The notes under the pieces were generated by a model, which was not told the DNA's origin, did no database searches, and was given only the letters and a program-made list of their open reading frames with translations. A DNA stretch of 64,000 nucleotides from Macrostomum hystrix (Eukaryota; Animalia; Platyhelminthes), in contig CATNEN010000011.1 of the NCBI GenBank assembly GCA_950097015.1, positions 248,001 to 312,000 of the forward strand. Reading direction: 5' to 3'. Made by a program: the position numbers and the translations under genes. Shown here in pieces: positions 18,934 through 41,832 of the stretch (positions are counted from its first letter, which is position 1; each line of letters starts with the position of its first letter).

Positions 18934-21900
18934 AATAATAATAATAATAGTTACACTCCACGCCGACCACAGAAGTGGCCAAGAGGGGGGAGCGTCAAAA
19001 CGCGCGTTTCAGTGCCAGGTCTCTGACGTGCTTCACGCCTGCCGCCTGGCTGGGTGCTCGGGCGTCTTCAAAAAGGCGGTCAATATAGCGGGCTGTACGT
19101 CCCTGGCCGCGCCTGCGCGGTCCCTGCGAGGTCCACAGCAGGACATCCTGCAGCGGCTCTGGGCAGTAGGCTTCGGCGCGGATGACATGCCCGGCCAGCC
19201 GCAGTCGCCGCTGACTCAGCAGGACAGAAGGCCGCGTTAGGCGCGCACGCTGGTACAGGGACTCGGTTGTCTCGCTGCCAGGGCCGCGGCGGGCGCCGAA
19301 AGCGGCGCGAACTAGGGCCGCATGCGCCGCGTCGAGCTGCGCCTCGAGCGCCCCGGTCATCGTCCAGGTCTCAGCATTGTACAAGAGGGCGGTCTCGACA
19401 ACTGCCTGGAACAGCTGGGACCTGGCGCCGTTCGACAGGGCCTCGGAGAGTAGCACCGCCCGCACAGAACGGTAGGCGGCCCAGGCCTTGCCGCGTCGTC
19501 TCGCCAGGTCGTCGCCCACGTCAGGCACCAGTCCGCCGAGGTAGACGAACTGACGGCACTTCGGGAGCACGGTCCCGGGGCCGTCACCGTCTCTTAGTCG
19601 AATCTCGGCAGGTAGGTTTTGCGGCACCGTCAGCACCTCGGTCTTCATGGCGTTGATAGCGAGGCCGACCCTCGCCGCCGCCGCAGTCAGGCCATCCAGC
19701 AGCCGTTGGGCGCCTTCGGCCGTCGTAGACAGCAGGGCAAGGTCGTCCGCGTAGCCGAGGACAGACAACTTCTTCTCCGGGTGCCGTCGACTAGTGCGTC
19801 TTTGAAGCAGAAAACCGTCCTCTGCAGTCGGCAGGCCGGTCCTGAGCACCCAGTCCATCACCAGCACGAAAAGAAAAGGCGCCAGGGTGTCACCCTGCAG
19901 CACTCCGGAGGTAGTGCTGAACAGGTCCGACGGTCCGTCTGGCGTCGCTACCACAGCGGTGGTGTCCTGATACAGTGCCATGATGGCGGAGATCAGCTGC
20001 TGCGGTATGTTGTAGGCACGGAGCACGTGAGGCAGCGCGCCGCGGGCCACCGAGTCGAAAGCTTTGAGAAAGTCAACAAAGATGACGACAAGGCTTGACT
20101 GGTGGATGCGCGCCTCCTCGATGATGCGACGGAGGGCCAGGATCTGAGTCACCGTGCCGCGACGGGGCCGGAACCCATTCTGCTCGTACCGCAGAAACGA
20201 GTCCAGCACAGGCTGTAACCGTGCTAACAGCACCCGGTTGAACAGCTTCGCGGCACAGGACATGAGCGAGATCCCGCGATGCTCCTCCTTCTTTGTAGTG
20301 CCCGGCTTCTTCGGGATGCCGACGATGGTGGCCTGGGTCCACTCGCGGGGCGCAGGGCCTCCCGCCAGGACGCCGTTCATCACGCGGGCCACCTCGGTGG
20401 CAACCCTTGTGACTCGCAGTGCCTCTACGGGGACCTCATCCGGACCGGGGGCGCGGCCTCCCGGTGCCCTGCGGGCGAATTCCACGATGTCGGTGCTGGT
20501 CACTGGACTGGTGTCGAAGTCCTCCTGCCGCGGTAGCGCCACCTCGGGGGGCAGCGGCATCTCGTTCGGCAGAGTCGGCGGCGGCGCGTTGACAATGGCG
20601 GCGAAGAAGGTGCGCAGCTCGTTTCTGCGCTCCTCGGCAGTATCGCCAGCCAGGTTGAGCGCCGCTTTCGTTTTGCGACCGGTGAGGGCGTTCACAACGG
20701 GCCAGACGACCCTGTTCTGCCGTTCAGGCCCGACAGAGGTGACAGCCCGGATCGCGTCGTCAACAGCGGCTTTCTGTCGACTTGCGTAGGCGTCTGCCAG
20801 GGCTTTCTCGGCATCGGATGTCGGTCGCCTGGCTCGCCGCAGCTGCTCGACAGTGCGGCGGGCCTCACGTACCTCCGGGTCGCTCGCCCAAACTGGAAGT
20901 TGCCGTGACGCGGGTTCCATAAGCGGCAGAGTCTTGGCAGCGGCAGTGGCGATGGCTGAGCTAATTGTGCTGTAGTCCGGCGCCTGCGCTGATCCCAGGG
21001 CGGTCGCGAAGGCGTACGCAAACCTGCTGCGGGTGCCTGGGTCTTGCAAGGCGCGGAAGTACCTTCTTCTAGGGCGTTTTGGTGGTCGGTACAGCGGATC
21101 AGAGAGCCTCAGGTCGCAGTAGAGCAGGCGATGGTCGGACCGGACAGCCAGGGGTTCCATTGTGTCGCAGTTCTGCAGCCGGCTGCGTTCGCGATGGCGA
21201 ATCAGCACGTGGTCGAGCTGCGCCAAGCGGGTCGTAGCGAATCGGCCTCGCGCGTTCCGCCTCCTTCGCTTGCAGCCGGCGAAGGTCGCCAGCCGGTTGG
21301 GCGGTTTGCGGAAGCGCGTGTTGGCTGACACCAGGTCGAGCCTCGCCATCAGGTCCGCAAGCGCGGCGGTGTTGGCGTTCTGGCGTGGCGACACAAACGG
21401 GCAGCGCTGGGACCGCGGCGCTACGGCGTTGAGATCACCAAGCATCACCACAGTGTCGCGATGCGCCACCATCTCGAGCTGCTCCGACAGGAACTCGAAG
21501 AATTCCTGCGCCTCCTGCTGATGGGCAGCTGTGGGAGCGTACGCACAGAAAAGCCGCACATTGCGGCGACGTAGTCTCACGTCCACGCGCAGCAGTCGGG
21601 CTGACAGGCTGACGCAGCAGATGCTCTCGCGTAGCCGTGGTCCGACAAGCACGCCGACTCCTCCACGGCCTCTGCTGTCCGCTGATGTGTAGTGCAGCGT
21701 CCAGCCGCTCCCCAGATCCTCACGGTGTAGGCCAGACTCAGCAGTGATTGACACCTCCTGCAGCATGACGAGGTCCAGCCGCAGGTCAGATGCCAGCTTT
21801 GCGAGCATGCCCCTTCTCCAGGCAGACTTTAGCGTTCGGCAGTTAAAGGTTGCTAGCCTTAGAGCGCGGTTTGTAAAGGCTGGGGCCCGATGTTGGTGGG

Positions 21901-22244
21901 CCTCACGGTCCCCGGCGCCACCCGGCGGAGCCGACTGGGCGGGGGTCGGCAGATCAGTGTTGCCAGCAGACTGGCGGAGGCGGCCTTTCATTCGCCCTCG
22001 CCGGTTGCGTTCCCTTCGCCGCTCGGTGCGACGTCGGGTGCTTCGCTGTCCACGCCGTCCTCCCGACCTGCCCCACTTGGCAGCCGCAGCACCAGGGCGC
22101 GGCTCTCCGTGTTGGCCGAGGCAAGCGCTGGGGACTCCAGCGTCACCAGGAGGCGGCGGCATTTATTTGCACTAGGGTGCAAATAATTTAACACTGCAAA
22201 TAATTTAACACTGCAAATAATTTAACACTGCAAATAATTTAACA
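18934..22244 (-). mobile_element. Apparently full-length non-LTR retrotransposon, RTE-like
   Basis: 10-bp TSD CTTTGATCTT at 18924-18933 and 22245-22254; (TTA)5 3' tail; short 3' UTR; single APE-RT ORF. Confidence 0.92.
18995..22162 (-). CDS. 1055-aa apurinic endonuclease plus reverse transcriptase polyprotein
   Basis: APE motifs ATFNCRTL, LQEV, GVG, AYAPT, GDLNA, LDHV, SDH. RT motifs RGISL, QNGFR, FVDFLKAFDSV, GVLQGDTLAPFLF, YADD, FVYLG. C-terminal RLRLAGHVIR as in RTE elements. No stops. Confidence 0.95.
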   Translation of the reverse strand: MPPPPGDAGVPSACLGQHGEPRPGAAAAKWGRSGGRRGQRSTRRRTERRRERNRRGRMKGRLRQSAGNTDLPTPAQSAPPGGAGDREAHQHRAPAFTNRALRLATFNCRTLKSAWRRGMLAKLASDLRLDLVMLQEVSITAESGLHREDLGSGWTLHYTSADSRGRGGVGVLVGPRLRESICCVSLSARLLRVDVRLRRRNVRLFCAYAPTAAHQQEAQEFFEFLSEQLEMVAHRDTVVMLGDLNAVAPRSQRCPFVSPRQNANTAALADLMARLDLVSANTRFRKPPNRLATFAGCKRRRRNARGRFATTRLAQLDHVLIRHRERSRLQNCDTMEPLAVRSDHRLLYCDLRLSDPLYRPPKRPRRRYFRALQDPGTRSRFAYAFATALGSAQAPDYSTISSAIATAAAKTLPLMEPASRQLPVWASDPEVREARRTVEQLRRARRPTSDAEKALADAYASRQKAAVDDAIRAVTSVGPERQNRVVWPVVNALTGRKTKAALNLAGDTAEERRNELRTFFAAIVNAPPPTLPNEMPLPPEVALPRQEDFDTSPVTSTDIVEFARRAPGGRAPGPDEVPVEALRVTRVATEVARVMNGVLAGGPAPREWTQATIVGIPKKPGTTKKEEHRGISLMSCAAKLFNRVLLARLQPVLDSFLRYEQNGFRPRRGTVTQILALRRIIEEARIHQSSLVVIFVDFLKAFDSVARGALPHVLRAYNIPQQLISAIMALYQDTTAVVATPDGPSDLFSTTSGVLQGDTLAPFLFVLVMDWVLRTGLPTAEDGFLLQRRTSRRHPEKKLSVLGYADDLALLSTTAEGAQRLLDGLTAAAARVGLAINAMKTEVLTVPQNLPAEIRLRDGDGPGTVLPKCRQFVYLGGLVPDVGDDLARRRGKAWAAYRSVRAVLLSEALSNGARSQLFQAVVETALLYNAETWTMTGALEAQLDAAHAALVRAAFGARRGPGSETTESLYQRARLTRPSVLLSQRRLRLAGHVIRAEAYCPEPLQDVLLWTSQGPRRRGQGRTARYIDRLFEDARAPSQAAGVKHVRDLALKRAF

Positions 22245-22530: not shown

Positions 22531-23261
22531 TTCCGAATGGATTGTAGAAATGCATTGTAGCATTTGCATTGTAGAGCATTTGCATGCTATATGTATTGTA
22601 GAAATGCAGAAAAATGCTCATTCGACATGATACGATTTAAAAAAATTCTTTTTCTATTTCTTTTACTTAGAAAAACAATTTCTAAGTCACACTAAAAAGT
22701 TCGGAGGGGGGCATGCAGCTGCCCCCCGCCCCCCCCTAGATCCGCCGGCCATTGACTTTCTCTATGAATTTATTTCTAATAACGATCTAACGATATAATC
22801 TTTCTCTAGACTGATAACGAGCGGGCTGGGGTGGGTGCACGCGGGAAGCTTAATTTTGGCCACGCATAAAATATGCACAGCCCTCTCATTGGCTGGCACG
22901 AAAAAAACATTGACCTTACAGCCAGGCTCAAAATTATTGATTATTGTATTGATCATTATTGATTATAATTATTATCATAATATCATAATCATTATTGATT
23001 ATGATTATTGTACACAGGGGTCGGTCGCGTTACGCAAATTATTAAGATGAATTCGTACTCTAACGTTTACTTATAGTACCGCGTAATGAAAAGAAAAAAT
23101 AATGGCTTAAATTAAACATACGTGTTATTGTTAAAACAGCCTCCCTCGGGGCCACCAACACCTTACAACGTCACAATATTTTAGCAGAAGCGAAATGTTA
23201 TACTTTTATCTTTCTTTGAATTTTTAATCAGTAAAATTTATGATTAGCATAACATTTTTTT

Positions 23262-25170
23262 CACCCGACGGCAGAGGTCTAGACGGGGAAAAAGCTTAAA
23301 ATATCTCCCGTCTAGCCTGGAAAAAGCTCGTCTGTTAAGCTTTCTTCTATGGACTAGACCGGAAAAAGCTCATCTGTTTTAACTAACTAGTACTTCAATG
23401 CAGCAAGGCTAGAAATTAAGCGATTTATTGTGTTTTGTTTAACCTGTTAAAAATCCTAAATTTTGAAATACGACTTTGTTTTAAAGTGCTGTTTGAATAA
23501 AAACGAATTTAAAATTCATCAGCACGGGGCTGGCACTGGTATATGATTCATTATCAGGTTTGATGTTACTTGCAGAATTTACAAGCTAGTCAGTTGCTTT
23601 AAAGCTATACATAGATGTGACTTACATTGTATGGTGAAGTTGAAGATTGCTTTTTGTCGAATATGAATTTTCTTGTAATGTAACAGTAAAGCCACTATAT
23701 TACTACTTGCTAGATTAGAAAGTTGTAGTAACAGGTTACAGGAATTAACTATTAACTCAGGTTCTTTAGCTTTATGGGCTTTTTCTGATGTGAAACTTTT
23801 GTTAAGTAGAAATCAAGCTAGGCTATGCCTAGGCACGATATATTTTCTAAACATTTGATCTATTTATCCAATAATGTGCTGATAAAAACTGCATAGTTAG
23901 AACCTTTTGTTATTATTAATGCTAGTTTATATATATAAATGCTAGCTGTCCAGTCCTCTTAGTTACCCAGCCCTCTAAGCATTTGATCTATTTATCCAAT
24001 AATGGGCTGATAAATACTGCTTAGTTATAGCTTTTTTGTTATTATATATGCTAGTTAGTAGTTTAATATAGGCACTCATTTGCATGGAGAAAATTTATTG
24101 AATTGTTCTAAAATACCAAATAGCTTTTTATGTTATGATCTAGTCATATTTGTTAATTTAGAGACATTATCTATTTTAGTATTAAAATACATTTTGCAAT
24201 ATAAAGTATAACATATATATACCATATATATCCTGTCCTCCTAGCTACCCAGCCCTCTAGTCCTAGATATCCTGCCCCTAGCTGTCCAGTCCTAGCTAAC
24301 AATCTTGCCCCCCTAGCTGGCCAGTCCTAGCTAGCTATCCTGCCCCCTAGATGTCCAGTCCTAGCTAGGTATCCTGCCCCCCCTAGCTAGCTATCCTGCC
24401 CCCCCTAGCTAGCTATCCTGCCCCCTAGCTGTCCAGTCCTAGCTTGCTTTCCTGCCCACTTAGCTTGCCAGTCCTAGCTAGCAGTCTTGCCCCCCCTAGC
24501 TGGCCAGTCCTAGCTAGCTATCCTGCCCCCTAGCTGTCCAGTCCTAGCTAGCAGTCTTGCCCCCCCCTAGCTGTCCAGTCCTAGCTAGCAATCTTGTCCC
24601 CCCTAGCTGGCCAGTCCTAGCTAGCTATCCTGCCCCCTAGCTGTCCAGTCCTAGCTAGCAGTCTTGCCCCCCCCTAGCTGTCCAGTCCTAGCTAGCAATC
24701 TTGTCCCCCCTAGCTGGCCAGTCCTAGCTAGCTATCCTGCCACCCCTAGCTAGCTATCCTGCCCCCTAGCTGTCCAGTCCTAGCTAGCCATTTTGCCCCC
24801 CCCCTAGCTGGCCAGTCCTAGCTAGCTATCCTGCCCCCCTAGCTAGCTATCCTGCCCCCTAGCTGTCCAGTCCTAGCTAGCCATCTTGCCCCCCCCTAGC
24901 TGGCCAGTCCTAGCTCGCTGTCCTGCCCCCCCTAGCTAGCTATCCCGCCCCCCTAGCTGTCCAGTCCTAGCTAGCCATCTTGCCCCCCCCTAGCTGGCCA
25001 GTCCTAGCTAGCTATCCTGCCCCCCTAGCTAGCTATCCTGCCCCCCCCCTAGCTAGCTATCCTGCCCCCCTAGCTATCCTTTCCCCATAGCTGTCTAGTC
25101 CTACGCCACCTTCCTTTCCTCCCAGCTACGCTGCCTCCTTGCTCTCTAGTCCTTTCAGCTATCCTGCCAA
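23262..25170 (+). repeat. Left terminal inverted repeat (about 970 bp unique plus minisatellite at about 24230-25110)
   Basis: Reverse complement of 36450-38947. Inner part is an array of ctagctagctatcctgccccc and ctagctgtccagtc units. Inner boundary approximate. Confidence 0.88.
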
Positions 25171-25313
25171 GTACCCTGTACTTCATTCGATTCCTTATCC
25201 TTTTGCTTTCTTATCTTATTTATCAGTCCTAGCTCTGCAGTACCTTTTAATTCTGCAACCTGTTTTGTTATTAGTATCTGTAACCTGCTGGTTTTTCGTT
25301 TTAACTTTTGCAG

Positions 25314-28241
25314 ATGGTTCACACTGCGTATTCATCCTTTTTGCAGGAAAATAAACGATTCGGTAAGATAGTATTCTTCATTGTATGTGCTTTCTTAATC
25401 CTTTTTAATTGTGTAAGTAATATAAGAATAAGTTCATGCATTTTTTTCATTTTTTTCTTGAAACGGATGTGTATATGTACATGTTTAATGATGTGATTTT
25501 AGTTATTTAGCATATCCATGAAGCTGACAAGTCGTTTATACTGTAGCTAATTGCTCAATTTTTTTAATTGGTTGTTATAAAGCAAAATCCCGAATGTACA
25601 GTAAAGGTAATAAAGGTGCATGATATATTTATACTGTTACTTTTCTATTTTCAGATCAACAGAAGGAGTTGGCAGCCAGATTCAAGTCTCTCTGTGGCTC
25701 GGAAAGACAGCGGCTCGCTGCAAAGGCAGCACAGACTGCCCCCAAGCTCTCAACGATAGAGAAAATGGTAAACTGCATTTTTTTGCTTGGCGGACTCACT
25801 TTTTATCGCTACCACACCTTTTTGATTTGCTATCACACCTATCGAAAAGTTTAGCTTCGCAAGGACCCATCGTGGAAATTTTTTTTAATTGTGGCCCGTC
25901 AGGATAAGCCACCATACTTTTCATGCAGCCCAGAAGATGTAGAACTTCATCCATTGGCGCGGCAAGTGTCAGAGGTATGAGCCACGTCTCATTGGTTAAT
26001 GACCTACGCTTACTCTTGATTAATTAATAATGCTCTGTTTAAAACTATTTTTAGAAGCTTATCGGCCATTTGAAAAATCCGCCTAAAAAAGCATAATGGG
26101 TTTGAGAAAGGCCCTTCGCAAGCAGGCTCAGGATGCATATAGTAAGTTATTTTTCTCTAGCTGGTTTTTGGGCATATACAGATCCTAGAGAAGATCAAAT
26201 TTATTTTAGCGTTCAATGTGGCTATGAATAATCTTATTGGTAATTAAGATGTGTCAGCAGTAAGATTGTAATAGGAAACTACTTTTATTAGGGATTATAT
26301 TATAGTTAAATAGACAAAACGTGACAAAAGTTGCCACATTTTTTGGATTGTTAACATTTTAGATGCAGCAGGGTTTCATGGCCGCGTCCAATGGAAGAAG
26401 TTGCCTATAATTGGCCAATTCGAACCATGGTTATGCGATCCTACATGGATGACAATGGAGTCTATTAAAGCGGCACTTTCGAGCCCTATCGTATTCCATC
26501 CATCAAGATCAGGTCTTAGTTTTAGTTCTTACTTCTTACTTAGCTAAACTTACTTACTTACTAACTAAACTAAACTAAACTAAACTAAACTAAACTAAAC
26601 TAACTAATAAACTAAACTTACTTCTTAGTTTAGCGCACAATATGAAGTTATTTCGTTATTTACACTGCTTTACTTTACCGATTTATACGATAAAGGTGAT
26701 TTTAATTAGTGCAGAGAAGTTTGAGTGCTTTGAAATATCGTCTAGCTGTTTCCGTTTATTCACTGACTGATTTATCCTTATTTTAAAATCATGACTCAAT
26801 TTAAACTAGCCGTTTTGTTTAATTTCTTTATTTCTCTCCAGTTCCAATCGACGTAAGCGAACCCGAAGGCAACGAAGACCATATCGACCAATCAGAAGAC
26901 CTTGACTGGCCGAGCTCCGGCGGTCCGCACTTCGGTGTGCCGAGCTCCAGTGGGCCTAGAGGCGGTGGGCCTAGTGGCGGCGGGCCGAACTCCAGCGGGC
27001 CTAGAAGCGGTGGGCCGAACTCCAGCGGGCCTAGAAGCGGTGGGCCTAGTGGCGGCGGGCCGAACTCCAGCGGGCCTAGAGGCGGTGGGCCTAGTGGCGG
27101 CGGGCCGAACTCCAGCGGGCCTAGAAGCGGTGGGCCGAACTCCAGCGGGCCTAGAAGCGGCGGGCCGAACTCCAGCGGGCCTAGAAGCGGCGGGCCGAAC
27201 TCCAGCGGGCCTAGAGGCGGTGGGCCTAGTGGCGTCGGGCCGAACTCCAGCGGGCCTAGAGGCGGCGGGCCGAACTCCAGCGGGCCTAGAGGCGGCGGGC
27301 CGAACTCCAGCGGGCCTAGAAGCGGTGGGCCTAGTGGCGGCGGGCCGAACTCCAGCGGGCCTAGAAGCGGTGGGCCTAGTGGCGGCGGGCCGAACTCCAG
27401 CGGGCCTAGAGGCGGTGGGCCTAGTGGCGGCGGGCCGAACTCCAGCGGGCCTAGAAGCGGTGGGCCGAACTCCAGCGGGCCTAGAAGCGGCGGGCCGAAC
27501 TCCAGCGGGCCTAGAAGCGGCGGGCCGAACTCCAGCGGGCCTAGAGGCGGTGGGCCTAGTGGCGTCGGGCCGAACTCCAGCGGGCCTAGAGGCGGCGGGC
27601 CGAACTCCAGCGGGCCTAGAGGCGGCGGGCCGAACTCCAGCGGGCCTAGAAGCGGTGGGCCTAGTGGCGGCGGGCCGAACTCCAGCGGGCCTAGAAGCGG
27701 TGGGCCTAGTGGCGGCGGGCCGAACTCCAGCGGGCCTAGAGGCGGTGGGCCTAGTGGCGTCGGGCCGAACTCCAGCGGGCCTAGAGGCGGCGGGCCGAAC
27801 TCCAGCGGGCCTAGAGGCGGCGGGCCGAACTCCAGCGGGCCTAGAAGCGGTGGGCCTAGTGGCGGCGGGCCGAACTCCAGCGGGCCTAGAAGCGGTGGGC
27901 CTAGTGGCGGCGGGCCGAACTCCAGCGGGCCTAGAGGCGGTGGGCCTAGTGGCGGCGGGCCGAACTCCAGCGGGCCTAAAAGCGGTGGGCCGAACTCCAG
28001 CGGGCCTAGAAGCGGCGGGCCGAACTCCAGCGGGCCTAGAAGCGGCGGGCCGAACTCCAGCGGGCCTGAAAGCGGTGGGCCGAACTCCGGTGGACCAGGA
28101 AGCGGCGGGCCTAGAGGCGGCGGGCCGAACTCCAGCGGGCCTAGAAGCGGCGGGCCTGAAAGCGGTGGGCCGACAAGGGATGGGGATTTAGCTAATAATG
28201 TTTTGTATGAAGATGGAGAACTTTTTGTTCTTGCTGATTAA
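25314..28241 (+). CDS. Transposon companion gene: HMG-box-like N-terminus, conserved-looking middle domain, Gly/Pro/Ser repeat tail; one apparent 1-nt deletion
   Basis: GT-AG exons 25314-25362, 25655-25767, 25855-25974, 26055-26141, 26363-26512, 26842-28241. All phases agree if one A is restored in the A6 run at 26085-26090. [11 protein letters not shown]...[11 protein letters not shown]...ERQRLAAKA resembles HMG helices. Confidence 0.75.
26530..26625. repeat. (ACTAA)n microsatellite in intron 5 of the companion gene
   Basis: Direct reading of actaaactaaactaa... Confidence 0.85.
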
Positions 28242-30530
28242 TTATGCTTCTTAACATGGCGCGCAGCACAAAGTTATTTCGCAATATATATTTTACTGCA
28301 AAGTAGTTTGAGTGCTTTGAAACATGGTCTTGCTGTTTTGTATTAGATAATTTGTGATTTGATGATTTGTACGAGCTATGTAGAACTTTTTGTTTTTACT
28401 GATTAATTTTGCTCGTTTCGGGTGGGTGCGGTGGGTGGTAATTGAGGGTGGGTGCCGGGTCCCCTCAGTCCATGGACTGAACAGCCGTTCGCAGCCTTCA
28501 GGTGCGCCGCGCAGTAGCTGCCAGCTGTGCTGTCGGATGCACATGTGGCAAGATTGGGACAGGCGTAATCGATTATTATTAAAAATATTATTATCATCGT
28601 AGTGCGAGTGCACACAAAGTCTTGCACTTTTGAATCCACCACCAAAAATTAAAACGGCAATATTGTTTTCGTGACCTAGACAAGGCACGCAATTTATGTT
28701 ATCAATGTTTGAACAGAATGTGCAGCTGAAGAGAATTAAAAAAAATGCTTCCTGTTTTCCACTTCTTTCAAGTACAAACTAAAAAACTGTCGAGGCAGAT
28801 TGAGAGGCGGCGGATAGCAGTACATGTGCCACGGATGGTCGTATGCGACCGGCCAAATTGTCGACCAACTGCACGGATCGTAAACGAGTATACTGGGCAG
28901 CGGCAGCTTTAATAATCCAACTCTCCCTCACCCCAACCAAAGGCTTAGCACCTTGCGCGTTGTGCGAATTGCGCAAGTTACAATACTGCGGAGAGGGAAA
29001 TGGATCACTAGTTGGGATGAGTGAGTTATTCAGGGTGGACACGCGCAGGTTTCAATTGCGCAAGTTGTGATAGGAGGGAGAAATTGCTCACTTGCTCATG
29101 TGAACACTTTTCAATGTCCAATAGTGTAACACTGACAATATCAAAGCGTAGCTTTTAACAGATATTAAGGGATAACTCTGATATCATAGCCTAGCACTGG
29201 TAGTAGGTTAGTTTTAGGGTAGATTGTACAGATTCGATTTTAGGATATTGGGATTTAGGGAAGTGCTTAGAAGATAAAAACATTTACGTGGGGAACTTTT
29301 AGTGACAATCGTATACTAAAATAGTTGCTTACAAAAATAGTAGGGGCATTAAAACAGTAAACGCTTATTCTTCCTTTTAATAATATACTTTATCGATACT
29401 CACGGCTGCATCTTATTCGTCCGTCCGTTATTTATAAGATCGGAGGTTTTGTCTGCACATCTGTTCTCGAGATGTCGGTTTTCGAGCAGTCAGATTTTTT
29501 TACATTTTCCATGAAATTAGGTAAAGAGAAGGTAAATTCCTAAGGTGAGTTCTGTACCGCTGGCTTAGCCGACCAACACCTAGAATCATGCTGATGATGC
29601 GTTCCTTGATACACAAACAACCATGAGCTGTAAACTTTGGCACGAGGACCATTAGTAAAAGGGATGTTACACTACTCATAAGCATAAAAGGATATGAAAA
29701 AATGAAATGCCGCCTTCGGCAAAACCGGGCGACCAGACTTGGGGTAAACCCCGAACCCGGAACCCGACCCGGACCCAAAAACCGACCCGACCCCGAACTT
29801 TACCCGACTATCTCCTGGACTTGGAGTGATGGCTAAGAAGAGTACTTGTCTTAAAATACCGCCTTTTCCTTTTTCTACTTTTCTATTGTTAACTCTTCTC
29901 CCCCACTATCACTACACTACTCGACTCCGAGGACAGTCGTACTCTTCACTTTACCCTCTACTCCTGAAAGCCTCAGGCAGGTTTGTATGTTAAAAATTCA
30001 GATTTAAGTTGCTGACGTGGGATTACATAGCTAACGAAGTAAAAAGAAAACATAATTAAAGACCATTTAAAGACATAATGCAGAATTAGGATGAGCTGTT
30101 TAGACTTTAGAAATATGTATATCTATATGTATGTATTATAATTCAAGGCCTAAAATTCGTAGAATGATTTATATACATTAGAATGACTAAGGCATCACGA
30201 TTATTAATTCATTAGTGCAGTGCAAATTACGCCAGTTCAGTTTAAGAAAAAAATATTTTTGAAATGGCGCGATTTCGAAAGACGCTTTATCACGTAATAA
30301 GGCAATACTTAAATAAAACTGATAATAATAAAAACACCGGAAACCTGAACCCGGTACCAAAACCCGACCCGAAAACCCGAACCCGAACACCCAACCCCGA
30401 ACCTCGAACCCGACCCGGACATCTACACCCGAACCCGGTACCAAAACCAAGAGCAAGAAAACTGAGAAACTTCAATTCTAGACTTCATTTGCTTTCAAAG
30501 ACTATAGTCTGAAGCTACATGTATACTGCA

Positions 30531-30895
30531 TACGAGGGGGTTAAAAAGTTTTGCCGTTGACTACTTTGAGAAGCCACTTCTACTCTTCGAGAAGAAGCTA
30601 AAAGTTTGGGGAATCAAAGGTTCGGATCCATGCACCCATGAAAGCTCGTCGAGAGGCATTTCTAGAAGGCAATGCGCATGACACTTGTTCTGCGACCGCA
30701 CTGGACCCCTTACGATCGAGCTTATGCAGGAGCCTGACACAAGCATCAATTCTGATCGCTACATGTACATGTACTGAAGGATGCATGACATTCAAAACAA
30801 GCGTCACAGAGACACCAAGCCCTTCATTCTCCATCACGATAATGCAATAACACACACTGCTCAGAAGACCACTGAGGCTGTCACAAGGCTCAAAC
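30531..30895 (+). mobile_element. Decayed, internally deleted mariner-like fragment
   Basis: TA-initiated TACGAGGGG...AAAAAGTT terminus typical of mariners; FILHHDNAITHTAQKT matches the mariner second-Asp motif HHDNAxxH. Confidence 0.6.
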
Positions 30896-31834
30896 CTTCT
30901 GCCACACCCGCCATACTCGGCCAATTAGCTTTGCTCGACTGGCTCACTACAGTCTGCAGCAGCAAGCACCAGGACGCAGGTGTCGAGCGGCGCTTCGTGC
31001 CGCCCTTCCTGCGTTCCTCCCGTACATGTACTTTTGTGTCTCAACCCCTTGCCCAGTGTATTTGCAATTACCCCCACCAGCCCAATCCGGTTCTCCGGTT
31101 TGTCTGGCCCTCGGCTTAGCCAGGCAGGCCGCTGATTGGCTGCAAACACTTATTTTCTCGACGCTCTAATTCTCTTCTTCGCCTCTCGGCTCTACTGCAG
31201 CCTGCCCCAACCCCAACACCCAACTCGGGGTGGCTAAGCCCCACTCCTCCCCTTCTCACCTCCATGGATGCGAGGCTGGTGCGAGCCAATTTTGCGTCTG
31301 CCACCCCCTGGCAATGTCATTGGCTGGAGGGCGCAGCCCGGCCCCGCCCCTGCTCTGATTCTCTCGCCCCTCCCCGCCACTATTTATTTGTGCGCTCCGC
31401 TCGCCATGCCATAACGCGCTCTCGACCGCCCTACCCTGCTTAATTGCTCCGGAAAACTTGGTTTGACGCGCGGTCTCTTACTCCGACGAATCAAATCGAT
31501 TACCTAAGATCAGATTTTGACACTTAGAAGAACCACACAGTGCATTGCGGTGAGCGCAGGCACAGAGCAGAGGATTGCCAATAATACTGAGCAGTCAGCG
31601 CGTGCACGACCTGCACTACTAGCCCGAGACGCGATTTATGAGCTCCCGGTAAGATTCGACTTTCCGCGTTTATTATTTCACCTGGTTGTTCTCATTGCTC
31701 GAGCGTCTTCGGTTATTTACGTTACGTTCGATGGAGTCCGAGTGGCCGTCTGCTCACTCGACACTTTTATTATCCGTTATTTCGATCATTATTGTCTGCA
31801 AAGTGTCCGTACGCCTCCAGGCTTTTGCTTACCC

Positions 31835-31950
31835 TAACACTCTGTAGTGCACAAGACCGACTGCAGGTGAGATGGCCAGGCAGATGCTGAGGTTCTGACC
31901 GCGCTGACCATTCACAGTCGCATTGGTTCTGTCCGATTGAGATGTCCAAC
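31835..31950 (-). pseudogene. IS630-Tc1-like transposase fragment
   Basis: TVNGQRGQNLSICLAISPAVGLVHY resembles the GQRGxNxxxCxAISxxGxxH segment of Tc1-like DDE domains; short and isolated. Confidence 0.45.
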
Positions 31951-32570
31951 CCAGCAGAAATTGCAGAAATTGCTTGCAAACTTGCCTAACTAGCATGCAA
32001 AAAGGTACGGTATAGTCGAACTCCACAGCTTAATTACAGTGAATGAGACTAGGCAAATATGCATTTACGTGTCAATTCCGATATTCATGGTAGATCGGCT
32101 ACTGCTAGTAGTTAAGCAGAATTATGAAAAAAACGAAGGCGCATTAACACTGCCTTTTAGGGTTTGACATTTGGTTTGTTGTTACTTTTTAGCAAAGTAA
32201 CTGCGACCATATCCAATCAATTTTCAAAATGGACGCGAATTCTCGCTTCTCTCGCCACTGTGGCATAAGAATTGTGCTCAAAGTAACAATTATTATTAAC
32301 TAAATCGCAGCACTGAAAACAAAAGTAATAAAATAGCGCGCTAGTGAGTAGATTCACAAAGTTGTTTTGATGTAAATCCACAGTCAGCAAGAAATACAAG
32401 AAATACAATTTTCCGTATTAAGGAAGATTGTACTGCAACAATATAAATGGGAACTGTAGGAAGTAATTGTGCACACCAATAACACATCGAAAAAATTTCT
32501 TCTGTTGCAGTTAAATGAGTTAGAAAATAACAGAAAGAAAAAAACTTTTATCTTGCACGACACCGTAAAA

Positions 32571-35500
32571 TCAATGCATTTGTGCGATCACATCAACGCA
32601 TTGAAACCGCAGGTCTTCAAGGACATGGCGACAATGGGAAAGCAAGCCTGTTTTGCCTTGTAACGACTCGATTTCTTGATAGAGCCGTAACTGCAGACGC
32701 GAAGCTTCTTCGCGGATCAGATTTTTCTCCTCACCTATTCGGGAAAATAGAGACGAAGCTTCGATCATGAGAAGACGATACCGTGCAGCAGGTTCAGATA
32801 GAGACACGCCGCAGTAGACATCGGCCGTTGGATTGTAATATGTGGCCAGAGGTTCCCGTGAAAATTGTGGCAGATCCTTGGACCAAATGGCCGCCATTTC
32901 GCGCTGAACAACAGACAATCGCGCGATGTACACCTTGGCGTCGCTTTGTGCACTGCATTGGCGAAGGCTTGCATACAAGCGCAGCCGCTCAACAGCTCCG
33001 CACCGAAGGCGCTCTAATGGAGTCAGCGGAGAGGATTCTTCTTCAACTAAATACTCCTGAAGGTGCAGCTGTCCTCGTAGAAATAGCTGGTGCGGCTCAC
33101 GATCTGAAAAATATGATTTCATTGCACGACTGTTTTATTGCTTTACTCACGCGAGACAACCGCAATTAAGGCAGTGTGTTACCTTCTGGAAGCAATTTCT
33201 GCAAGAGACTGGTCAGAGACGCCGAGTGCCTGCGCAGCAAACGAAGTCTGTTTTGCAGCCATTTCCCTGGAGTGGAGGAAGTTGAAAAAAATTCTTTCAA
33301 TAAATCGGCGCCCATAAATGATAACCGCCATCGAATAACTGAATAAATGACATCCATTTTTAATACATTTGCTGTCAAAAGTTGAGGATATATACATTTT
33401 CAACCTTTAAACTGAGAAAATATGCGACAGAGAACAGAGAGATAGCATTAAAGTAAAAGGACAAAAAATCAAACACTGACCACATTCCAGTAAGTGACTG
33501 ACATTCGAACGCCAAATGTAATGAGCTAGAGTGTAAGTGCGGTGGTCAATGCGCATCTCCTTTAACTGTGGGCCGTATGGTCGGAACGATGAATTCAACC
33601 TCTCACAGTGTTCGCCATCGGTTAGGCCGCAGCCTTCAACGAATCTAACTGAGTTTTTTAGCTGAAATATGAAATAATAGGAATGATATGTGGCAAAAAA
33701 TATAATGTACAATCAAAACTATTTTCTTTCTTGTTTTGGTACGAACAAATGTAATACGAAATTTATAAATGAGACACAAAATACATACTCGGCAGGATGT
33801 CTTGTGAGCGAATGCATGAAAGGCGTTTACAGCAGGAACAATGGTTACATATGGATAGTCAGCCGCGATCTGCTGCAATCGACGGAACATCTTGCAGGCA
33901 ATGTCATAGACAAAGATGACTACCCCATTTACGCCACTTGCTTCCAAGAAGTATCGAAGACATTGTTCAGCGTATACAAGGCGTTCTCCTGGCGATCGGA
34001 TGTCAGCGCATGAAACTATAATTGAGTGGCGACAGGAGAGCATGAAGAGTCCGTTAACATCAAGGGCTCTTGAAGAAATTCTCCGAGTGACTGAGCCAGC
34101 TTGAAAATTCGAACACGAAGCAGTATCTTCGCCAGCTTCCTTGGGATCGACATCAACATGAATAAAAGGTGCCGGAAGACGACCATCGAGTGGTGATGGA
34201 CACAGCTGCTGACCAGCCCGGCGTCTGTGACGCAAACCCATGCACCCATCTCCTGTGACGATTGTTGTGGACGGCAACGAACCTGGAGTGTTCTGAATAA
34301 TTTGACGGATCCGCGATTTAAATTTTACAACAATTATTGATTCGTGTATACATGCGAATGCTTGCATTTTAGTAAATTTCAACAGTGATCTAATTAAGAG
34401 CAGCAATTTAGAAATTAGACACCGTAGCTGGGGTAGCAAATTTTAGACACAATGTGCACTTCGTCTATCGTCTTTCCTAAGGAAAACCTGCTCAATTTCG
34501 AAAAACAGTAGCAAGTTATTACTCACAGCATCTGGACACAACAAGCAACCGGTCGGCCAAGGAAGCACATCGCGAAGAAGTTGCCTATATCTTTTAAGCA
34601 CATCGTTTCGACGAAGAGCATCGTATAAATGCAGCCATGTCTGGAAACGAAAATGTTTTTCCAATTGTTATCGGCTTTGAGTTTGTTGGTAAAACGCTCT
34701 ATACTTAACCATATTTATATTTTAAGATACTATCCCATTTTTAGTATATAGGACTAGAAGATACAAGTTTTTTATAACTTACGCGCTGTCGACCCTCAGT
34801 GATATTATCAAACGTAAGCAAGCAGCGCACAGCTCGTAGAAGTGACATCTTTCCGTCGGATGTGAGACAATCGAGCATATCCAGAAGTCTCTTGTGAATG
34901 AATTTGTCGGAACTAACTTTTGTAACAGGAAAGTAGCCCGCAATAAGCATAGCATCGTTAATAGAACATTCCGCACAAAGATGAACTGACACAAAGATGC
35001 GATCTAAAATGATATTGCCCCAGAATGTAAATACGTAAAACAATGTTAATACGGGTAGCACCATCGCAATACACAGCAAATGTTAAAAATTACGTACGAC
35101 CAAGATGGTCGTATACATTAGCAGACGTGCTACTATGTAAATCCTCTCGGGAATTAACACAGCAATGAATGACAGGCCGCTCAGCAGGAGTAGAGTCTTG
35201 GTACATCTCTCCCTATAATGAGTTTGAAGAGTAAACGAAAGTCACATCCACGACATAAGAAGATGCACTTTCATATGAAGTTATGAACAGTCAACTTACA
35301 TTCCACTCGGTAAATTTGTGCACCAGAAAGGTGCCATGCGTATCTTTCATACAATCCGAGCAGAATTTGCTGGCGCATGTAGTACAATATACGAAACCAT
35401 CATTCATGCAGCGGCAGCACGGCTGTAGAATAAATTGCTTTAGACAGGCAGACGACTGCTGCTCAATAACTGGTTCTTCTCGCTCCCAGTCCTGTAGAGG

Positions 35501-35725
35501 CTGCTGCAACTTTGGTGATGCTGCCACGGAATCTACGACGTCCCAGTCCCTTTCTGCATGATCTGATACATGATCTGCTACAGAATGCTGAGAAGCTGCG
35601 GATTCCTGACTGCTTTGAGTAGTTTGCCGGTTAAAGTTGGCTCTAGCGACATTATAGGGCAGAAAGAGTGAACCACGGCCGCGGCGCCGCGATACTCGGA
35701 TGCCAAGATTTACTGAACGAGGAAA
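32571..35725 (-). CDS. KDZ (Kyakuja-Dileera-Zisupton) transposase, spliced, first exon not located
   Basis: Zn cluster CCRC...CTTC...CSDC...H...HKFTEWNG; CxC2-like CAEC...LIAGYFPVT; CLLCP; catalytic region GDG, SCRH, GER..Y, YDIAC, FHAFAH...C, GCGLTDGEHCER. About eight GT-AG exons with compatible phases and no internal stop found. Confidence 0.88.
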
Positions 35726-35783
35726 CTGAAATAAAATAAAGCATAAGAAAACTACAGTAAGGAAAAAGGAACAAAGTAGTGCT

Positions 35784-36100
35784 ACAGCAGGGCAGGGGCT
35801 GGTGGTGGGGCAGGGGCAGGACTACTGCAGGGTTTGGGCAGGGGATGGGACTGGGCAGGGGCAGGGGGTTTGGGGCAGGGGCAGGGACAGGGGGTTGGGG
35901 CAGGGGCAGGGGGTTGGGGCAGGGGCAGGGACAGGGGGTTGGGGCAGGGGCAGGGACAGGGGGTCGGGGCTGGAGCAGGGGCAGCGGCTGAGGCTGGGTC
36001 TAGGGCAGGGGTAGGGCATCGGTAGAGGCAAGGGGTGGGGTAGGGGCCAGACAAGGGCAGTGCGAAAGTTGGACAGGGGCAGGGGCAGGGGCAGAGCAGG
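35784..36100. repeat. (GGGGCA)n-type G-rich repeat upstream of the KDZ gene
   Basis: Direct reading of ggggcaggggcaggg... Confidence 0.85.
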
Positions 36101-36449
36101 GTCCGTGTCATATAAAGGGAACATAATAAATGACTTCGTTAAATCCAGCTTTATAGGCCACAGCTTGTAGTATATAAATATAACCTTCTAGCTAGTGGTT
36201 GGTATAGCTACCCTGGTAAGGTTGGCAGGTTGCTCATAACTGGAGATTTATCTTAATTTAAGTAATTAAATGAAATATGAATTGTATCTCATTTGTCATA
36301 TAATAGTTTAGGAAATCAAATAGATATAGCCTTATTTAATCACTTCGAAATAGTGCCTCGGTTAGCAATATAAAATCATAAACCAAGTTTAATAAATTAT
36401 TCTTTATAATAAATTATAAAGAAAAAAAGTATTCTTGTATAAATACTGG

Positions 36450-38947
36450 ACTGGACTGGATAGCTAGCTAGGACTAGAAAGCTAGGGAGGCAAGATAGGA
36501 CTAGACAGCTAGTGGGGGGGCAGGATAGCTAGCTAGGACTGGACAGCTAGGGGGGCAGAAAAGCTAGCTAGGAATGGACAGCTAGGGGGCAGGATAGCTA
36601 TCTAGGGGGGGCAGGATAGCTATCTAGGGGGGGCAGGATAGCTAGCTAGGGGGGCAGGATAGCTAGCTAGGGGGGCAGGATAGCTAGCTAAGGGGGGCAG
36701 GATAGCTAGCTAGGACTGGCCACCTAGGGGGGTGGCAAGATTTCTAGCTAGGACTGGACAGCTATGGGGCAGGATAGCTAGCTAGGACTGGACAGCTAGG
36801 GGGGCAGGATAGCTAGCTAGGACTAGGCAGTTAGGGGGGCACTGGGCACAATAGCTAGCTAGGACTGGACAGCTAGGGGGCAGGATAGCGAGCTAGGACT
36901 GGACAGCTAGGGGCCAGGATAGCTAGCTAGGACTGGACAGCTAGGGGCCAGGATAGCTAGCTAGGACTGGCCAGCTAGGGGCCAGGATTGCTAGCTAGGA
37001 CTGGGCAGTTAGGGGGGCACTGGGCACAATAGCTAGCTAGGACTGGACAGCTAGGGGGCAGGATAGCTAGCTAGGACTGGACAGCTAGGGGCCAGGATAG
37101 CTAGCTAGGACTGGCCAGCTAGGGGCCAGGATTGCTAGCTAGGACTGGCCAGCTAGGGGGCAGGATAGCTAGCTAGGACTAGACAGCTAGGGGGGCAAGA
37201 TTGCTAGCTAGGACTGGACAGCTAGGGGGCAGGATAGCTAGCTAGGGGGGCAGGATAGCTAGCTAGGGGGGCAGGATAGCTAGCTAGGGGGGCAGGATAG
37301 CTAGCTAGGGGGGCAGGATAGCTAGCTAGGGGGGCAGGATAGCTAGCTAGGGGGGCAGGATAGCTAGCTAGGGGGGGCAGGATAGCTAGCTAGGGGGGCA
37401 GGATAGCTAGCTAGGGGGGCATGATAGCTAGCTAGGACTGGCCAGCTAGGGGGGGCAAGATTTCTAGCTAGGACTGGACAGCTAGTGGGCAGGATAGCTA
37501 GCTAGGGGTGGCAGGATAGCTAGCTAGGACTAGGCAGTTGGGGGGCACTGGGCACAATAGCTAGCTAGGACTGGACAGCTAGGGGGCAGGATAGCTAGCT
37601 AGGACTGGACAGCTAGGGGGGCAGGATTGCTAGCTAGGGGGGGCAAGATTGCTAGCTAGGACTGGACAGCTAGTGGGCAGGATAGCTAGCTAGGGGGGGC
37701 CTGGATAGCTAGCTAGGACTGGCCAGCTAGGGGGGGGGCAAGATTTCTAGCAAGGACTGGACAGCTAGTGGGCAGGATAGCTAGCTAGGGGTGGCAGGAT
37801 AGCTAGCTAGGACTAGGCAGTTAGGGGGGCACTGGGCACAATAGCTAGCTAGGACTGGACAGCTAGGGGGCAGGATAGCTAGCTAGGACTGGACAGCTAG
37901 GGGCCAGGATAGCTAACTAGGACTGGCCAGCTAGGGGGGCAAGATTGCTAGCTAGGACTGGACAGCTAGGGGGCAGGATAGCTAGTTAGGACTAGACAGC
38001 TAGGGGGGCAAGATTGCTAGCTAGGACTAGACAGCTAGGGGCAGGATATCTAGGAGGACTAGAGGGCTGGGTAGCGAGGAGGACTGGATAAATATAGTAT
38101 ATATATATGTTATACTTTATATTGTAAAATGTATTTAATACTAATATAGATAATGTCTCTAAATTAACAAATATGACTAGATCATAACATAAAAAGCTAT
38201 TTGGTAGTTTAGAACAATTCAATAAATTTTCTTCATGCAAATGAGTGCCATATAATTTTTTATATAACTACTAACTAGCATTTATAATAACAAAAAAGCT
38301 ATAATTAAACAGTATTTATATAATTTATCAGCACATTATTGGATAAATAGATCAAATGTTTAGAAAATATATCATGCCTAGGCATAGCCTAGCTTGATTT
38401 CTACTTAACAAAAGTTTCACATCAGAAAAAGCCCATAAAGCTAAAGAACCTGAGTTAATAGTTAATTCCTGTAACCTGTTACTACAACTTTCTAATCTAG
38501 CAAGTAGTAATATAGTGGCTTTACTGTTACATTACAAGAAAATTCATATTCGACAAAAAGCAATCTTCAACTTCACCATACAATGTAAGTCACATCTATG
38601 TATAGCTTTAAAGCAACTGACTAGCTTGTAAATTCTGCAAGTAACATCAAACCTGATAATGAATCATATACCAGTGCCAGCCCGTGCTGATGAATTTTAA
38701 ATTCGTTTTTATTTAAACAGCACTTTAAAACAAAGTCGTATTTCAAAATTTAGGATTTTTAACAGGTTAAACAAAACACAATAAATCGCTTAATTTCTAG
38801 CCTTGCTGCATTGAAGTACTAGTTAGTTAAAACAGATGAGCTTTTTCCGGTCTAGTCCATAGAAGAAAGCTTAACAGACGAGCTTTTTCCAGGCTAGACG
38901 GGAGATATTTTAAGCTTTTTCCCCGTCTAGACCTCTGCCGTCGGGTG
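36450..38947 (-). repeat. Right terminal inverted repeat (minisatellite at about 36450-38090 plus unique outer part)
   Basis: Mirror of the left TIR, with a longer satellite array. Confidence 0.88.
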
Positions 38948-41832
38948 TTTTTTTCGTGTTGCTCAGAAGTCAAAACAGAACGATATCACCATCTATAAGT
39001 CTATTGCCAAGAGATGGATTTACTAAAATTTAATATAAGCAGTACCACACTACCAGTCTTCATCTTGTACGTTTGATCTTTTGTTGAAGACGACGCATTT
39101 TTATACGACCTGCACCCTAAATAAGTTTGGCATTATACATTTTTCAATCTCGTCAGCTCACTTAAATAAGTAGGCCCAACTTAAGAATAATAATTTATGG
39201 GCCCCTAGCAGTGCTGCCTGCAAATACTTGTAGCCTAACCTTTTTAATGTAGCCACATTTTCAGCTCTAGTTCGGCCTATTTTCTACTACAGTCTACAGT
39301 ACTAGGTTCAATGGCAGCACTCTTATTTTGCACTTTACCCATCCATTTCAGTTTTTAAGTGATTAGGCCTATGAATAAACAACCAGTTGATTGATCTTAA
39401 GGGAATGAAGCATGAACAAGTATTTTGTACTAGGCCTAAGCAGTTTAGCAGAAAAGAAAAGGCAAAATGCTTGGCCTAGTTCTGCAGAAAAGGCTCAGGG
39501 GCAATCTTCTGGTTTTAGGCCTACACATTTAATTATTAACAAAAGTTAACTTTTCCTAAATTAAGATAAGCAAAAATTTATAATTGTCTAGCTAGGCCTA
39601 CTGGCAGTGTATGGAGCTATGTCTATGGCAAAATAGGCCTAGGCCTACTTGCAGTTGCAGGTTTTGAATGACATGTCAATGTTATGTTTATGAGTTTAAA
39701 ACTTTGTCCACCTTGGAATTCTTTGCCTCAAATCCCACCTTGAAATGTAATAACATATTAAGGTAGAGGATTCCACCTCAAATTTTCTGTCTCTGTCTCA
39801 AATATATAGGGCCTACATGATAATAATATTACTAATATCAAATAAGTTACAAGTAAAATGTGAGACTTGATGCCATTATGAATTTTAGTCAAAATTGATT
39901 TAGAGAGCTCACTTTCAGTTGGAGGATTCAGCCTTCAATTCAGCCTTATCTATTTCTTGTTTAATAATGTAATGTGGTCAATAATAATGGTATCATGTGA
40001 CAAATATTACTAGGTAAGCCTATACTGAGTTGATAGTAGTCATACATGCGCAACACCTGGCCGACCCAGCCAAACCAGCCAGGTGAAACAAGGGCCAAGC
40101 AAGGTAAGTCACAAAAACCAATCAACTAAGTGCAAAAAAATTAAAGGGGGACCAAAGGACAAAAAAGGAAGGTGTGAAGAAGAAGAAAAAGGGGAGAGAA
40201 AAAATAGAGCAAATGAGAGCAAACTAGGCCTAAGTCATAAATAGAGCAATGAAACGAACTAGGCCTATGTTGCAATTGAGAGCAAACTAAGTTGTAAATA
40301 GAGCAAAAACTAAGTCACACAGCCGGCTAAGATTTGGGAGGTTGCACATGTATGATACTAGTTACAATTATCAAGACAAAATTCAATGCAGAATTCAAGG
40401 TGGAATTCAAAGTGCTCATCTAAATAAGAGTAGCATGAGTGAAAAGCTGCCTAAAAGGCCAAATAGCACTGGAAAGGACTACCAAATGATAGTCCTAGAC
40501 CAGTATACTTTTGATAGAGATAGATGGCACAATAGTACAATGTACATATCCTCTACTCAAGAAAATTTGGACTAGGACTCCATTGTTACTTGTGAAGCTT
40601 ATACCAGTAGGAAACCCTATGTGTATCTGATATTGGGAAGAGTGTCACTATTGTATTGAGATATATGTATATGGCATATTTTATATAACAATCACACTAG
40701 GGCCTAGTAGGAGCTAACTTTAGTAAGTTCCAATAGTTTTATAGTTTCACCCTATTGGAGCAAATAGGGGTTTATGTGGACAGCGTCCGGCACACTTGTG
40801 AAACATTGCCTGCGCGGCTGCAGGTCAAAAAAGGTCATTTGGTATGTGTCCATATTTTCGCAAAATCACCACGTAGCTGTTCTATTTTTAGAAATACACT
40901 ACGGAGATCAAAAATGGTCTTTCAACATTTTTTTCACAAAATCAATCATCTAGTTGAGTCAGACTGAAGATATTTAGACTGAAGATACAATATTGAAGAT
41001 ATATAGCAATTGCATGTTTGGGCTCTTTTTCTTGAAACCAGCTGCGCACTTGTGTGCCCAGCGGGAGTGTCCACAGCTTTTTTTAATTTTGCTCCATTAG
41101 TGTAGTTTCATAAAAAATTTTAACATAAAAGTTATAAGCCTACTTGAATATTTTATATTTTATATATATTATATTTTATAGGCAAAAATATTGAATTTGA
41201 AATGTTTTTATGTTTTTATTACTTTTATACTTGGTTGTAGCACTTTTTAATACACTTTTTGTTTATTATGGCAAAAATACATCTTTATGATTGATTGCCA
41301 AAATCTATATAATTTGCAGCATAGTATGAGTATATACCTTTTTTTCTTTGATTTTAAATATTTTTTTGTATTCGCTGTCACTTATTTTTTCTTGATAGTG
41401 ATTTGTGTTTTATTTTTAGGACTATCTTATTGCCTTTTGTATTTACCAAGTTAAAGTTAGGCAGCCTGTTGCTTTTTGTTGGTTTATTTCCTAAATATTC
41501 AGACACATTACCACTTTTTTGTAATAAAACAGAAAATTCATGTTCACCTTAAAAAGGTTGTTGATTACGATTACTCGTATGCATATGGTAAACTAAATAA
41601 AGGCCTAATATATGTTCAATTGTATTTTCTAGTCTGTGTTTATAGTAGACAAAGTTTCTAAAAAAAATAAAATGCTTGTAGCAGAATTTTCTATTCTTAG
41701 ACAAGATCTATTTTCTTAGACAAGAAGCTGTAAGCATTACATTAAGAGCATGCTATCACTCCTTAGATTGCAGAAATTAGCTATTAGCCAGCTTGCAAAA
41801 AAACCTTCAAGGTACCAGAGACTAATTGAAAA

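Follow-up and report, generated by a model that had tools for sequence, protein, structure and literature searches.

The 64,000-nucleotide (nt) stretch of Macrostomum hystrix DNA analysed here (contig CATNEN010000011.1, positions 248,001 to 312,000 of the forward strand), referred to as the window, contains a 15,686-bp element at window positions 23262-38947, with termini CA..TG and two convergent genes that each start beside an inverted arm and point inward. The minus-strand gene encodes a spliced transposase of the KDZ (Kyakuja-Dileera-Zisupton) class, while the plus-strand gene, called gene 2 below, has six exons. The element is very probably a complete and recently inserted flatworm-lineage DNA transposon of the KDZ class, lying on its Kyakuja/CxC2 side. 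The novelty lies in a two-gene copy, delimited in full, of a flatworm-lineage KDZ family, with satellite-filled arms, an orphan, putatively accessory gene and RNA evidence.

Ends, target site and arms

The left end of the element opens with CACCCGACGG at 23262 and the right end closes with its reverse complement at 38947, in line with the exact inverted ends that an earlier, sequence-only reading of this stretch had described. The terminal inverted repeats (TIRs) occupy the outermost 625 nt and are 99.5% alike, with 2 mismatches and one 1-nt insertion or deletion (indel). In particular, the left TIR (23262-23886, plus strand) starts with CACCCGACGG and carries the CA.. terminus, and the right TIR (38324-38947, minus strand) ends with CCGTCGGGTG and carries the ..TG terminus. 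The TIRs are flanked by a target-site duplication (TSD), TTTTTTT, whose left copy (23255-23261) is identical to the right copy (38948-38954); the TSD is read as 7 bp, which is perfect on both sides, and an 8-bp reading gives mismatches. The sequence expected at the site without the element is ...AACATTTTTTTCGTG..., and the element's flanks are not repeated within the window. The insertion looks recent: its TIRs are nearly identical, the 7-bp duplication is undamaged and the transposase frame is open, which agrees with the earlier suggestion of a recently mobile element.

The inverted arms measure about 1.8 kb on the left and 2.45 kb on the right, close to the 1.9 and 2.5 kb given by the earlier reading. 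Inside the 625-nt TIRs, they are just ~83-97% alike and are made of tandem CTAG-rich arrays of the CCTAGCTAGCTATCCTGCCCCC / CTAGCTGTCCAGT type. The left-arm satellite (24239-25076, plus strand, 0.84 kb) consists of CTAG-rich units of about 22 and 36 nt, and the right-arm satellite (36496-38085, minus strand, 1.6 kb) consists of the same unit family in inverted orientation and is about twice as long; both were delimited by Tandem Repeats Finder (TRF) and by their inverted matches to each other. The density of CTAG is 81 per kb in the arm satellites, 14 per kb in the TIRs and 36 per kb in the coding satellite of gene 2, compared to a background of 1.5-3 per kb. Further, a GGGCAG-type microsatellite (35853-36094, TRF) lies upstream of the transposase. 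Long inverted arms of tandem repeats are the hallmark of foldback elements, although the likeness is architectural only, the transposase being KDZ.

Moreover, both tips carry, in their outermost 110 nt, three copies each of a subterminal CTAG-core motif, CTAGMCNGG..AAAAGCT, which is otherwise absent from the window. At the left end, it spans 23279-23370 on the plus strand, with copies at 23279-23296, 23312-23328 and 23354-23370, and the motifs are mirrored at the right end at 38839-38897. A motif search returned 4 matches, all in the two ends, versus 0.04 expected; the third copy of the tip motif has one additional base and was read directly from the sequence. The motifs are candidate binding sites for the transposase.

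The transposase gene

The Pfam KDZ family (PF18758, gathering cut-off of 26.6 bits) matches two minus-strand exons, with 67.8 bits at 33789-34282 (profile positions 3-168) and 38.5 bits at 33481-33661 (profile positions 164-216). The gene model was guided by the M. lignano protein PAA67003 (P0001), which matches the window in six colinear blocks, and by canonical splice sites. It has at least 8 exons, separated by 7 introns that are all GT..AG with pyrimidine-rich acceptors, and it is open for about 724-755 codons with no internal stop. The earlier reading had recognised a spliced KDZ transposase and found no stop; the stop codon is now placed at 32573-32571.

All exons of the gene lie on the minus strand. 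The first mapped exon (35300-35725) encodes an RG-rich stretch and a B-box-like zinc finger, where B-box families score 17-20 bits, below their cut-off. The next two exons encode the first half (35098-35212) and the second half (34783-35003) of a CxC cysteine cluster, and are followed by an exon at 34523-34640. The main exon (33789-34282) contains the first D (TGDG), CRH, GER, the second D (YDIAC) and FHxxxH..C, and the exon at 33481-33661 contains the GLTDGEHCER motif, in the region of the catalytic E, and KEM. An exon at 33183-33266 and the last exon (32571-33103), ending in the stop codon, complete the model. The domain order is therefore a B-box-like zinc finger, a CxC cysteine cluster and a KDZ core of the RNase-H type.

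In an 18-sequence alignment with 17 relatives, the window protein keeps the near-invariant columns, namely the zinc-finger Cys/His, the CxC pair, the D of DG.FGL, CRH, GER, YD.AC, FH..H...C, GLTDGE..ER and KEM. The exceptions are a change from F to M in DG.FGL and a change from W to N after GE..ER, the latter being common to the closest relative. The window's exon pieces gave no Pfam CxC match, though the conserved cysteines of the cluster align with those of the relatives. Of the words sampled from 32500-35900, a fraction of 0.62-0.65 is present in runs X5-X8, and the modelled exons account for 0.64 of the stretch; this fraction fits a spliced transposase RNA, as an indirect line of evidence.

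The second gene

Logan contigs of four runs were aligned to 25080-26938, the unique stretch between the two satellites. The contigs of X6 and X7 together contain five GT..AG joints on the plus strand, yielding six exons and bearing out the convergent six-exon gene of the earlier reading. In both runs, the depth over introns 1 and 5 is zero; because introns lack depth and the joints are GT..AG, these contigs behave as RNA. Exon 1 (25080-25362) contains the ATG at 25314 and joins position 25362 to 25655; its transcript continues leftwards past 25080 toward the arm satellite, and because the contigs covering 25080-25342/25361 overrun the left edge of the aligned stretch, it begins at or inside the left-arm satellite. 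RNA-type contig joints, GT..AG, delimit exon 2 (25655-25767), and contig joints also delimit exon 3 (25855-25974; also in run X4 of a second organism) and exon 4 (26055-26141), while exon 5 (26363-26512) is defined by contigs of X6 and X7. Exon 6 (26842-28241) is defined by the joint from 26512 to 26842, by contigs that reach the edge of the stretch at 26938, and by an open frame up to the stop codon at 28239-28241.

The reading frame of gene 2 runs for 104 codons from the ATG at 25314, is broken in exon 4 by a run of six A (26085-26090), and then continues for 534 codons to the stop. RNA contigs that are otherwise identical to the window have one A more, behind 26084, which joins both frames; the break in the window copy reflects either a true loss of 1 nt or an assembly error in the homopolymer. 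The product has a head of about 190 amino acids, followed by a low-complexity repeat tail of about 430 amino acids that is rich in G, P, S, N and R. The tail is encoded within exon 6 by a G+C-rich internal satellite with a 15-bp unit (26939-28171, 1.2 kb, TRF), which is open in all six frames and makes up two thirds of the coding length.

Diverged copies of gene 2, 90-95% alike, are present in RNA-type contigs from two organisms (A and B). One diverged copy keeps the splice of intron 3. In this copy, intron 2 has accumulated 7 substitutions and 2 indels in 87 nt, versus 3 changes in the 120 nt of exon 3. Its sequence ahead of position 25739, abutting that position, is arm-satellite-like, so that at least one copy besides the window's combines gene 2 with the arm repeat.

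Readings of the gene 2 product as HMG-like and as GTF2I-like found no support in Pfam, the PDB or database searches with exon pieces. For the HMG box, exon frames gave no HMG match at E values up to 1 and the PDB gave none, and the putative box is split by intron 1. For the GTF2I repeat, the exon-5 piece had no match in Pfam, the databases, the Atlas or the PDB, and the region in question spans exons 4 and 5.

Two further observations concern the contigs themselves. Run X4, which is labelled 'DNA?' and comes from the second organism, has a GT..AG-skipping contig and some introns without depth, and behaves like an RNA library. A variant gene 2 copy is found in contigs of X4, X6 and X7 (26204-26469 and 26514-26616), with 13 other letters in place of 264 nt and a loss of another 101 nt; past 26653, the sequence of these contigs is unlike the window.

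Relatives and placement in the KDZ class

An exhaustive HMMER search with the main exon returned 230 relatives, the best with 47% identity, and a word-indexed protein search with the closest homologue added just three further relatives. The top relatives are multicopy M. lignano proteins labelled 'B box-type' or 'CxC2 domain-containing', the closest of which are 47% identical to the window protein in the main exon and 52% in the core. The lineage had been proposed as undescribed; its protein family is already in public databases, as these multicopy hypothetical M. lignano proteins.

A maximum-likelihood tree built from 92 KDZ cores places the window protein in a clade with M. lignano P0001, P0002, P0004 and P0005, with a support of 99% in the Shimodaira-Hasegawa-like approximate likelihood ratio test (SH-aLRT). 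The half of the tree that contains this clade (moderate support, 85% SH-aLRT) also holds proteins from sea urchin, sea cucumber, amphioxus, snail, priapulid and sponge, together with a Lentinula protein that has a strong CxC2 match and the green-algal 'Tcr1 transposon ORF2'; its interior is an unresolved polytomy, and the CxC2 and Tcr1 proteins sit on long branches. In the other half, the sampled proteins are CxC1-type, and fungal wherever the source is named. The window protein falls outside this fungal CxC1 half, and is accordingly not of the Dileera/CxC1 type. The assignment to the CxC2 type is weak: in the tree, the protein falls with CxC2-type and Tcr1-like proteins, and the closest homologue scores 19.7 bits for CxC2 versus 19.4 bits for CxC1, both under the cut-off of about 27.

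The labels Kyakuja, Dileera and Zisupton, as used here, rest on later papers and on the Pfam CxC types. Tcr1 is a Kyakuja element (PMC9940879). Kyakuja elements have 7-bp TSDs and CA..TG termini, and the TSDs of Zisupton and Dileera are 8 bp (PMC12730594); the canonical Zisupton protein has CxC4 and SWIM (PMC11343200). Both end features of Kyakuja, the 7-bp TSD and the CA..TG termini, are present in the M. hystrix element. The Zisupton protein of fish has, in addition, a Ulp1 protease domain. In Pfam scans, neither the exon pieces nor the closest homologues matched CxC4, SWIM or Peptidase_C48 (Ulp1). Zisupton, which the earlier reading had named among the usual animal relatives, is disfavoured as the closest relative: the C-terminal exon gave no SWIM or Ulp1 match, the cysteine-cluster exons gave no CxC4 match, and the TSD is 7 bp rather than 8. 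Because it shares its tree half with Tcr1 ORF2, has the 7-bp duplication and the CA..TG termini, and yielded no CxC4 or SWIM, the element is best called Kyakuja-like, a label to be read with the weakness of the deep tree branches in mind.

Comparison with known transposons

Among described elements, the Kyakuja transposons (Tcr1 / Kyakuja-3_cRei of Chlamydomonas; Kyakuja-1/2_LB of Laccaria) have the KDZ domain, the 7-bp TSD and the CA..TG termini in common with the M. hystrix element, and the Tcr1 ORF2 protein occupies the same, moderately supported half of the tree. They also have more than one open reading frame (ORF) per element, the 'Tcr1 transposon ORF2' being the KDZ protein. In contrast, the described fungal families have no TIRs, whereas the M. 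hystrix element has 625-nt TIRs and satellite arms. Its host is an animal, and its second gene is unrelated to the TET/JBP genes that fungal KDZ elements carry (PMC12730594).

Cryptococcus KDZ1, KDZ2 and KDZ3, which belong to the Dileera clade, are 9-11 kb long and have been shown to move, and the KDZ1 TIR is 236 bp (PMC11343200). Similar to the M. hystrix element, they are large cut-and-paste elements with long TIRs, a CxC and KDZ transposase and extra ORFs without known domains; they differ in their 8-bp TSD and CxC1 type, and satellite arms are not reported for them. Zisupton, which occurs in fish and in further animals (Bohne et al. 2012, as cited in PMC9297572 and PMC12730594), is also an animal KDZ element with a multi-exon transposase and TIRs, but has an 8-bp TSD, CxC4 and SWIM in its protein and a single gene. 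Multi-exon KDZ transposases are known from animals (PMC9297572).

The M. lignano proteins (PAA67003, PAA74961, PAA68011 and paralogues) share the order of B-box-like finger, CxC and KDZ and are likewise multicopy, but are annotated as proteins only. At one M. lignano locus (L002), a SET-domain gene (14857-16860, plus strand) lies 2 kb downstream of the KDZ transposase gene, on the same strand.

En/Spm (TnpA and TnpD) and PIF/Harbinger (with a Myb-like protein) are two-protein transposons with reiterated subterminal sites, and Drosophila foldback elements have arrays of short repeats inside long inverted arms. The M. hystrix element resembles them in having a second element-encoded protein and repeat arrays in its arms. 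This is a likeness of working and not of kinship, the transposase superfamilies being unrelated. Within the KDZ class, the two-gene plan is not new, because elements with extra ORFs have been published from Cryptococcus (PMC11343200), from other fungi (PMC12730594) and as Tcr1 (PMC9940879).

Proposed mechanism and alternative explanations

A mechanism can be proposed in which the zinc-finger-rich N-terminus of the transposase would bind the terminal and subterminal CTAG motifs, and its DDE-type core would excise the element and reinsert it with a 7-bp staggered cut. The arms would carry the promoters of both inward-pointing genes. The gene 2 protein may serve as an accessory factor on the reiterated arm repeats, in end pairing or regulation, by analogy with TnpA of En/Spm and the Myb-like protein of PIF/Harbinger; the window copy may then need gene 2 in trans, its A-run having broken the frame. 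A more specific proposal is that gene 2 is a new transposition cofactor, where the head would read the CTAG-core repeats of the arms and of its own coding satellite, the tail would gather the arms in a paired-end complex, and the arrays would act as inward promoters of both genes. This proposal is a long shot; if true, it would make the element an animal KDZ lineage with a two-component mechanism undescribed for the class.

Several observations weigh against the reading of the locus as a complete, recently inserted KDZ transposon. At its borders, the flanking duplication is a T homopolymer, making 7 bp only an upper bound for the TSD length, and no part of the element recurs elsewhere in the 64-kb window. 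The lack of a second copy would also be expected if the locus were not mobile at all, but a host gene pair within a segmental duplication in inverted orientation, or two satellite-rich regions wrongly joined in assembly; kilobase satellite arms are hard to assemble. However, the inverted identity ends exactly at the CA..TG tips beside identical 7-bp flanks, and the transposase inside belongs to a class that makes 7-8-bp duplications (PMC12730594). The assembled junction between the left satellite edge and gene 2 is also found in contigs of other runs, and diverged copies exist, so that an immobile origin is very improbable.

For the transposase of the proposed transposon, the introns were modelled from sequence, and the start codon was not found: no ATG precedes the zinc finger in exon 1, and an in-frame TAG (35824-35822) cuts it off from an upstream ATG-led open stretch, which is written in a CTGCCC microsatellite. 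The likely acceptor of exon 1 is a strong one, TTTCAG at 35726-35731, in phase 0, and the frame is open up to 35821 with no upstream ATG. A search by hand for an upstream ATG exon found several possible GT/AG combinations, none of them compelling. The relatives begin just ~20-25 residues before their RRGRPR motif, and a start at or just before 35725 therefore fits. Trans-spliced leaders are known in flatworms; one idea is that a leader ending in AUG could supply the start, in frame at the phase-0 acceptor.

Two further points concern the rest of the element. In the window, the A6 run throws gene 2 out of frame, and the ~4.3 kb between the two stop codons (28242-32570) contain no recognised gene or domain, save a repeat-like segment at 28437-28581. 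Together with the missing start, these points could describe a copy that is complete in outline but non-autonomous, moving only with proteins from sister copies, where gene 2 is frameshifted into frames of 104 and 534 codons, the transposase start is lost behind the TAG, and the space between the genes is repeat-like filler. Against such a defect, the otherwise identical RNA-type contigs have the extra A, and the break may be a homopolymer assembly error or an allele; the relatives' short N-termini fit a start at the 35725 acceptor, where the AUG would come from a very small 5′ exon or from a trans-spliced leader; and the frame stays open for 755 codons once the seven introns are removed. A non-autonomous copy is on the unlikely side.

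The role of gene 2 in the proposed transposon is the last point in question. The gene has no homologue or domain in Pfam, the protein databases, the Atlas or the PDB, using as queries stop-free exon pieces from the head and from the unique start of the tail; the Pfam scan covered 19 stop-free frames on both strands of the element, 10 of which were plus-strand frames of the gene 2 region, and an Atlas look-up with a gene 2 piece returned noise only. Moreover, the loci of two M. lignano relatives have no enclosing TIRs, none of the same tips and no gene 2 homologue within 10 kb. The lack of homologues, at these two loci too, favours gene 2 as passenger cargo, or as a transcript born of the element's satellites, which is expressed but takes no part in transposition, as does the large share of its coding length that is satellite open in every frame. 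Fungal KDZ elements likewise carry ORFs of unknown function and TET/JBP cargo (PMC11343200, PMC12730594). However, a diverged copy, expressed in a second organism too, preserves the arrangement of exons and introns, and the introns have changed more than exon 3, leaving a passenger role as a tentative explanation that is doubtful overall.

Complete KDZ elements whose ends are defined are well documented in fungi, green algae and fish, whereas most animal KDZ sequences are known only as orphan 'hypothetical proteins'. As a probable complete transposon, the M. hystrix copy supplies the ends, the target duplication, both gene models and RNA evidence for a flatworm-lineage family, and supports the reading of the multicopy Macrostomum proteins as transposases. 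It is also a candidate endogenous cut-and-paste element, one that may still be active, in an animal group that serves regeneration research.

Other features of the window

Between the two genes, the short interspersed-repeat-like segment of ~140 nt (28437-28581) is 81-85% identical to three copies in one M. lignano locus (L001; 994-1078, 14110-14247 and 23451-23562). The segment is tRNA-like by eye, and ARAGORN and Rfam scans of the element found nothing. The sequence between the stop codons also contains AACCCG-type microsatellites (30342-30437) and a block of 54-55% G+C at 30740-31740. A mariner remnant at 30778-31116, suggested by eye from HHDNA..H, had no Pfam match, and this reading was dropped. 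Outside the element, about 1.1 kb to its left, an intact-looking long interspersed nuclear element (LINE) occupies 18995-22162 on the minus strand, with ~65% G+C and an uninterrupted 1055-codon ORF that encodes Exo_endo_phos and reverse transcriptase domains.

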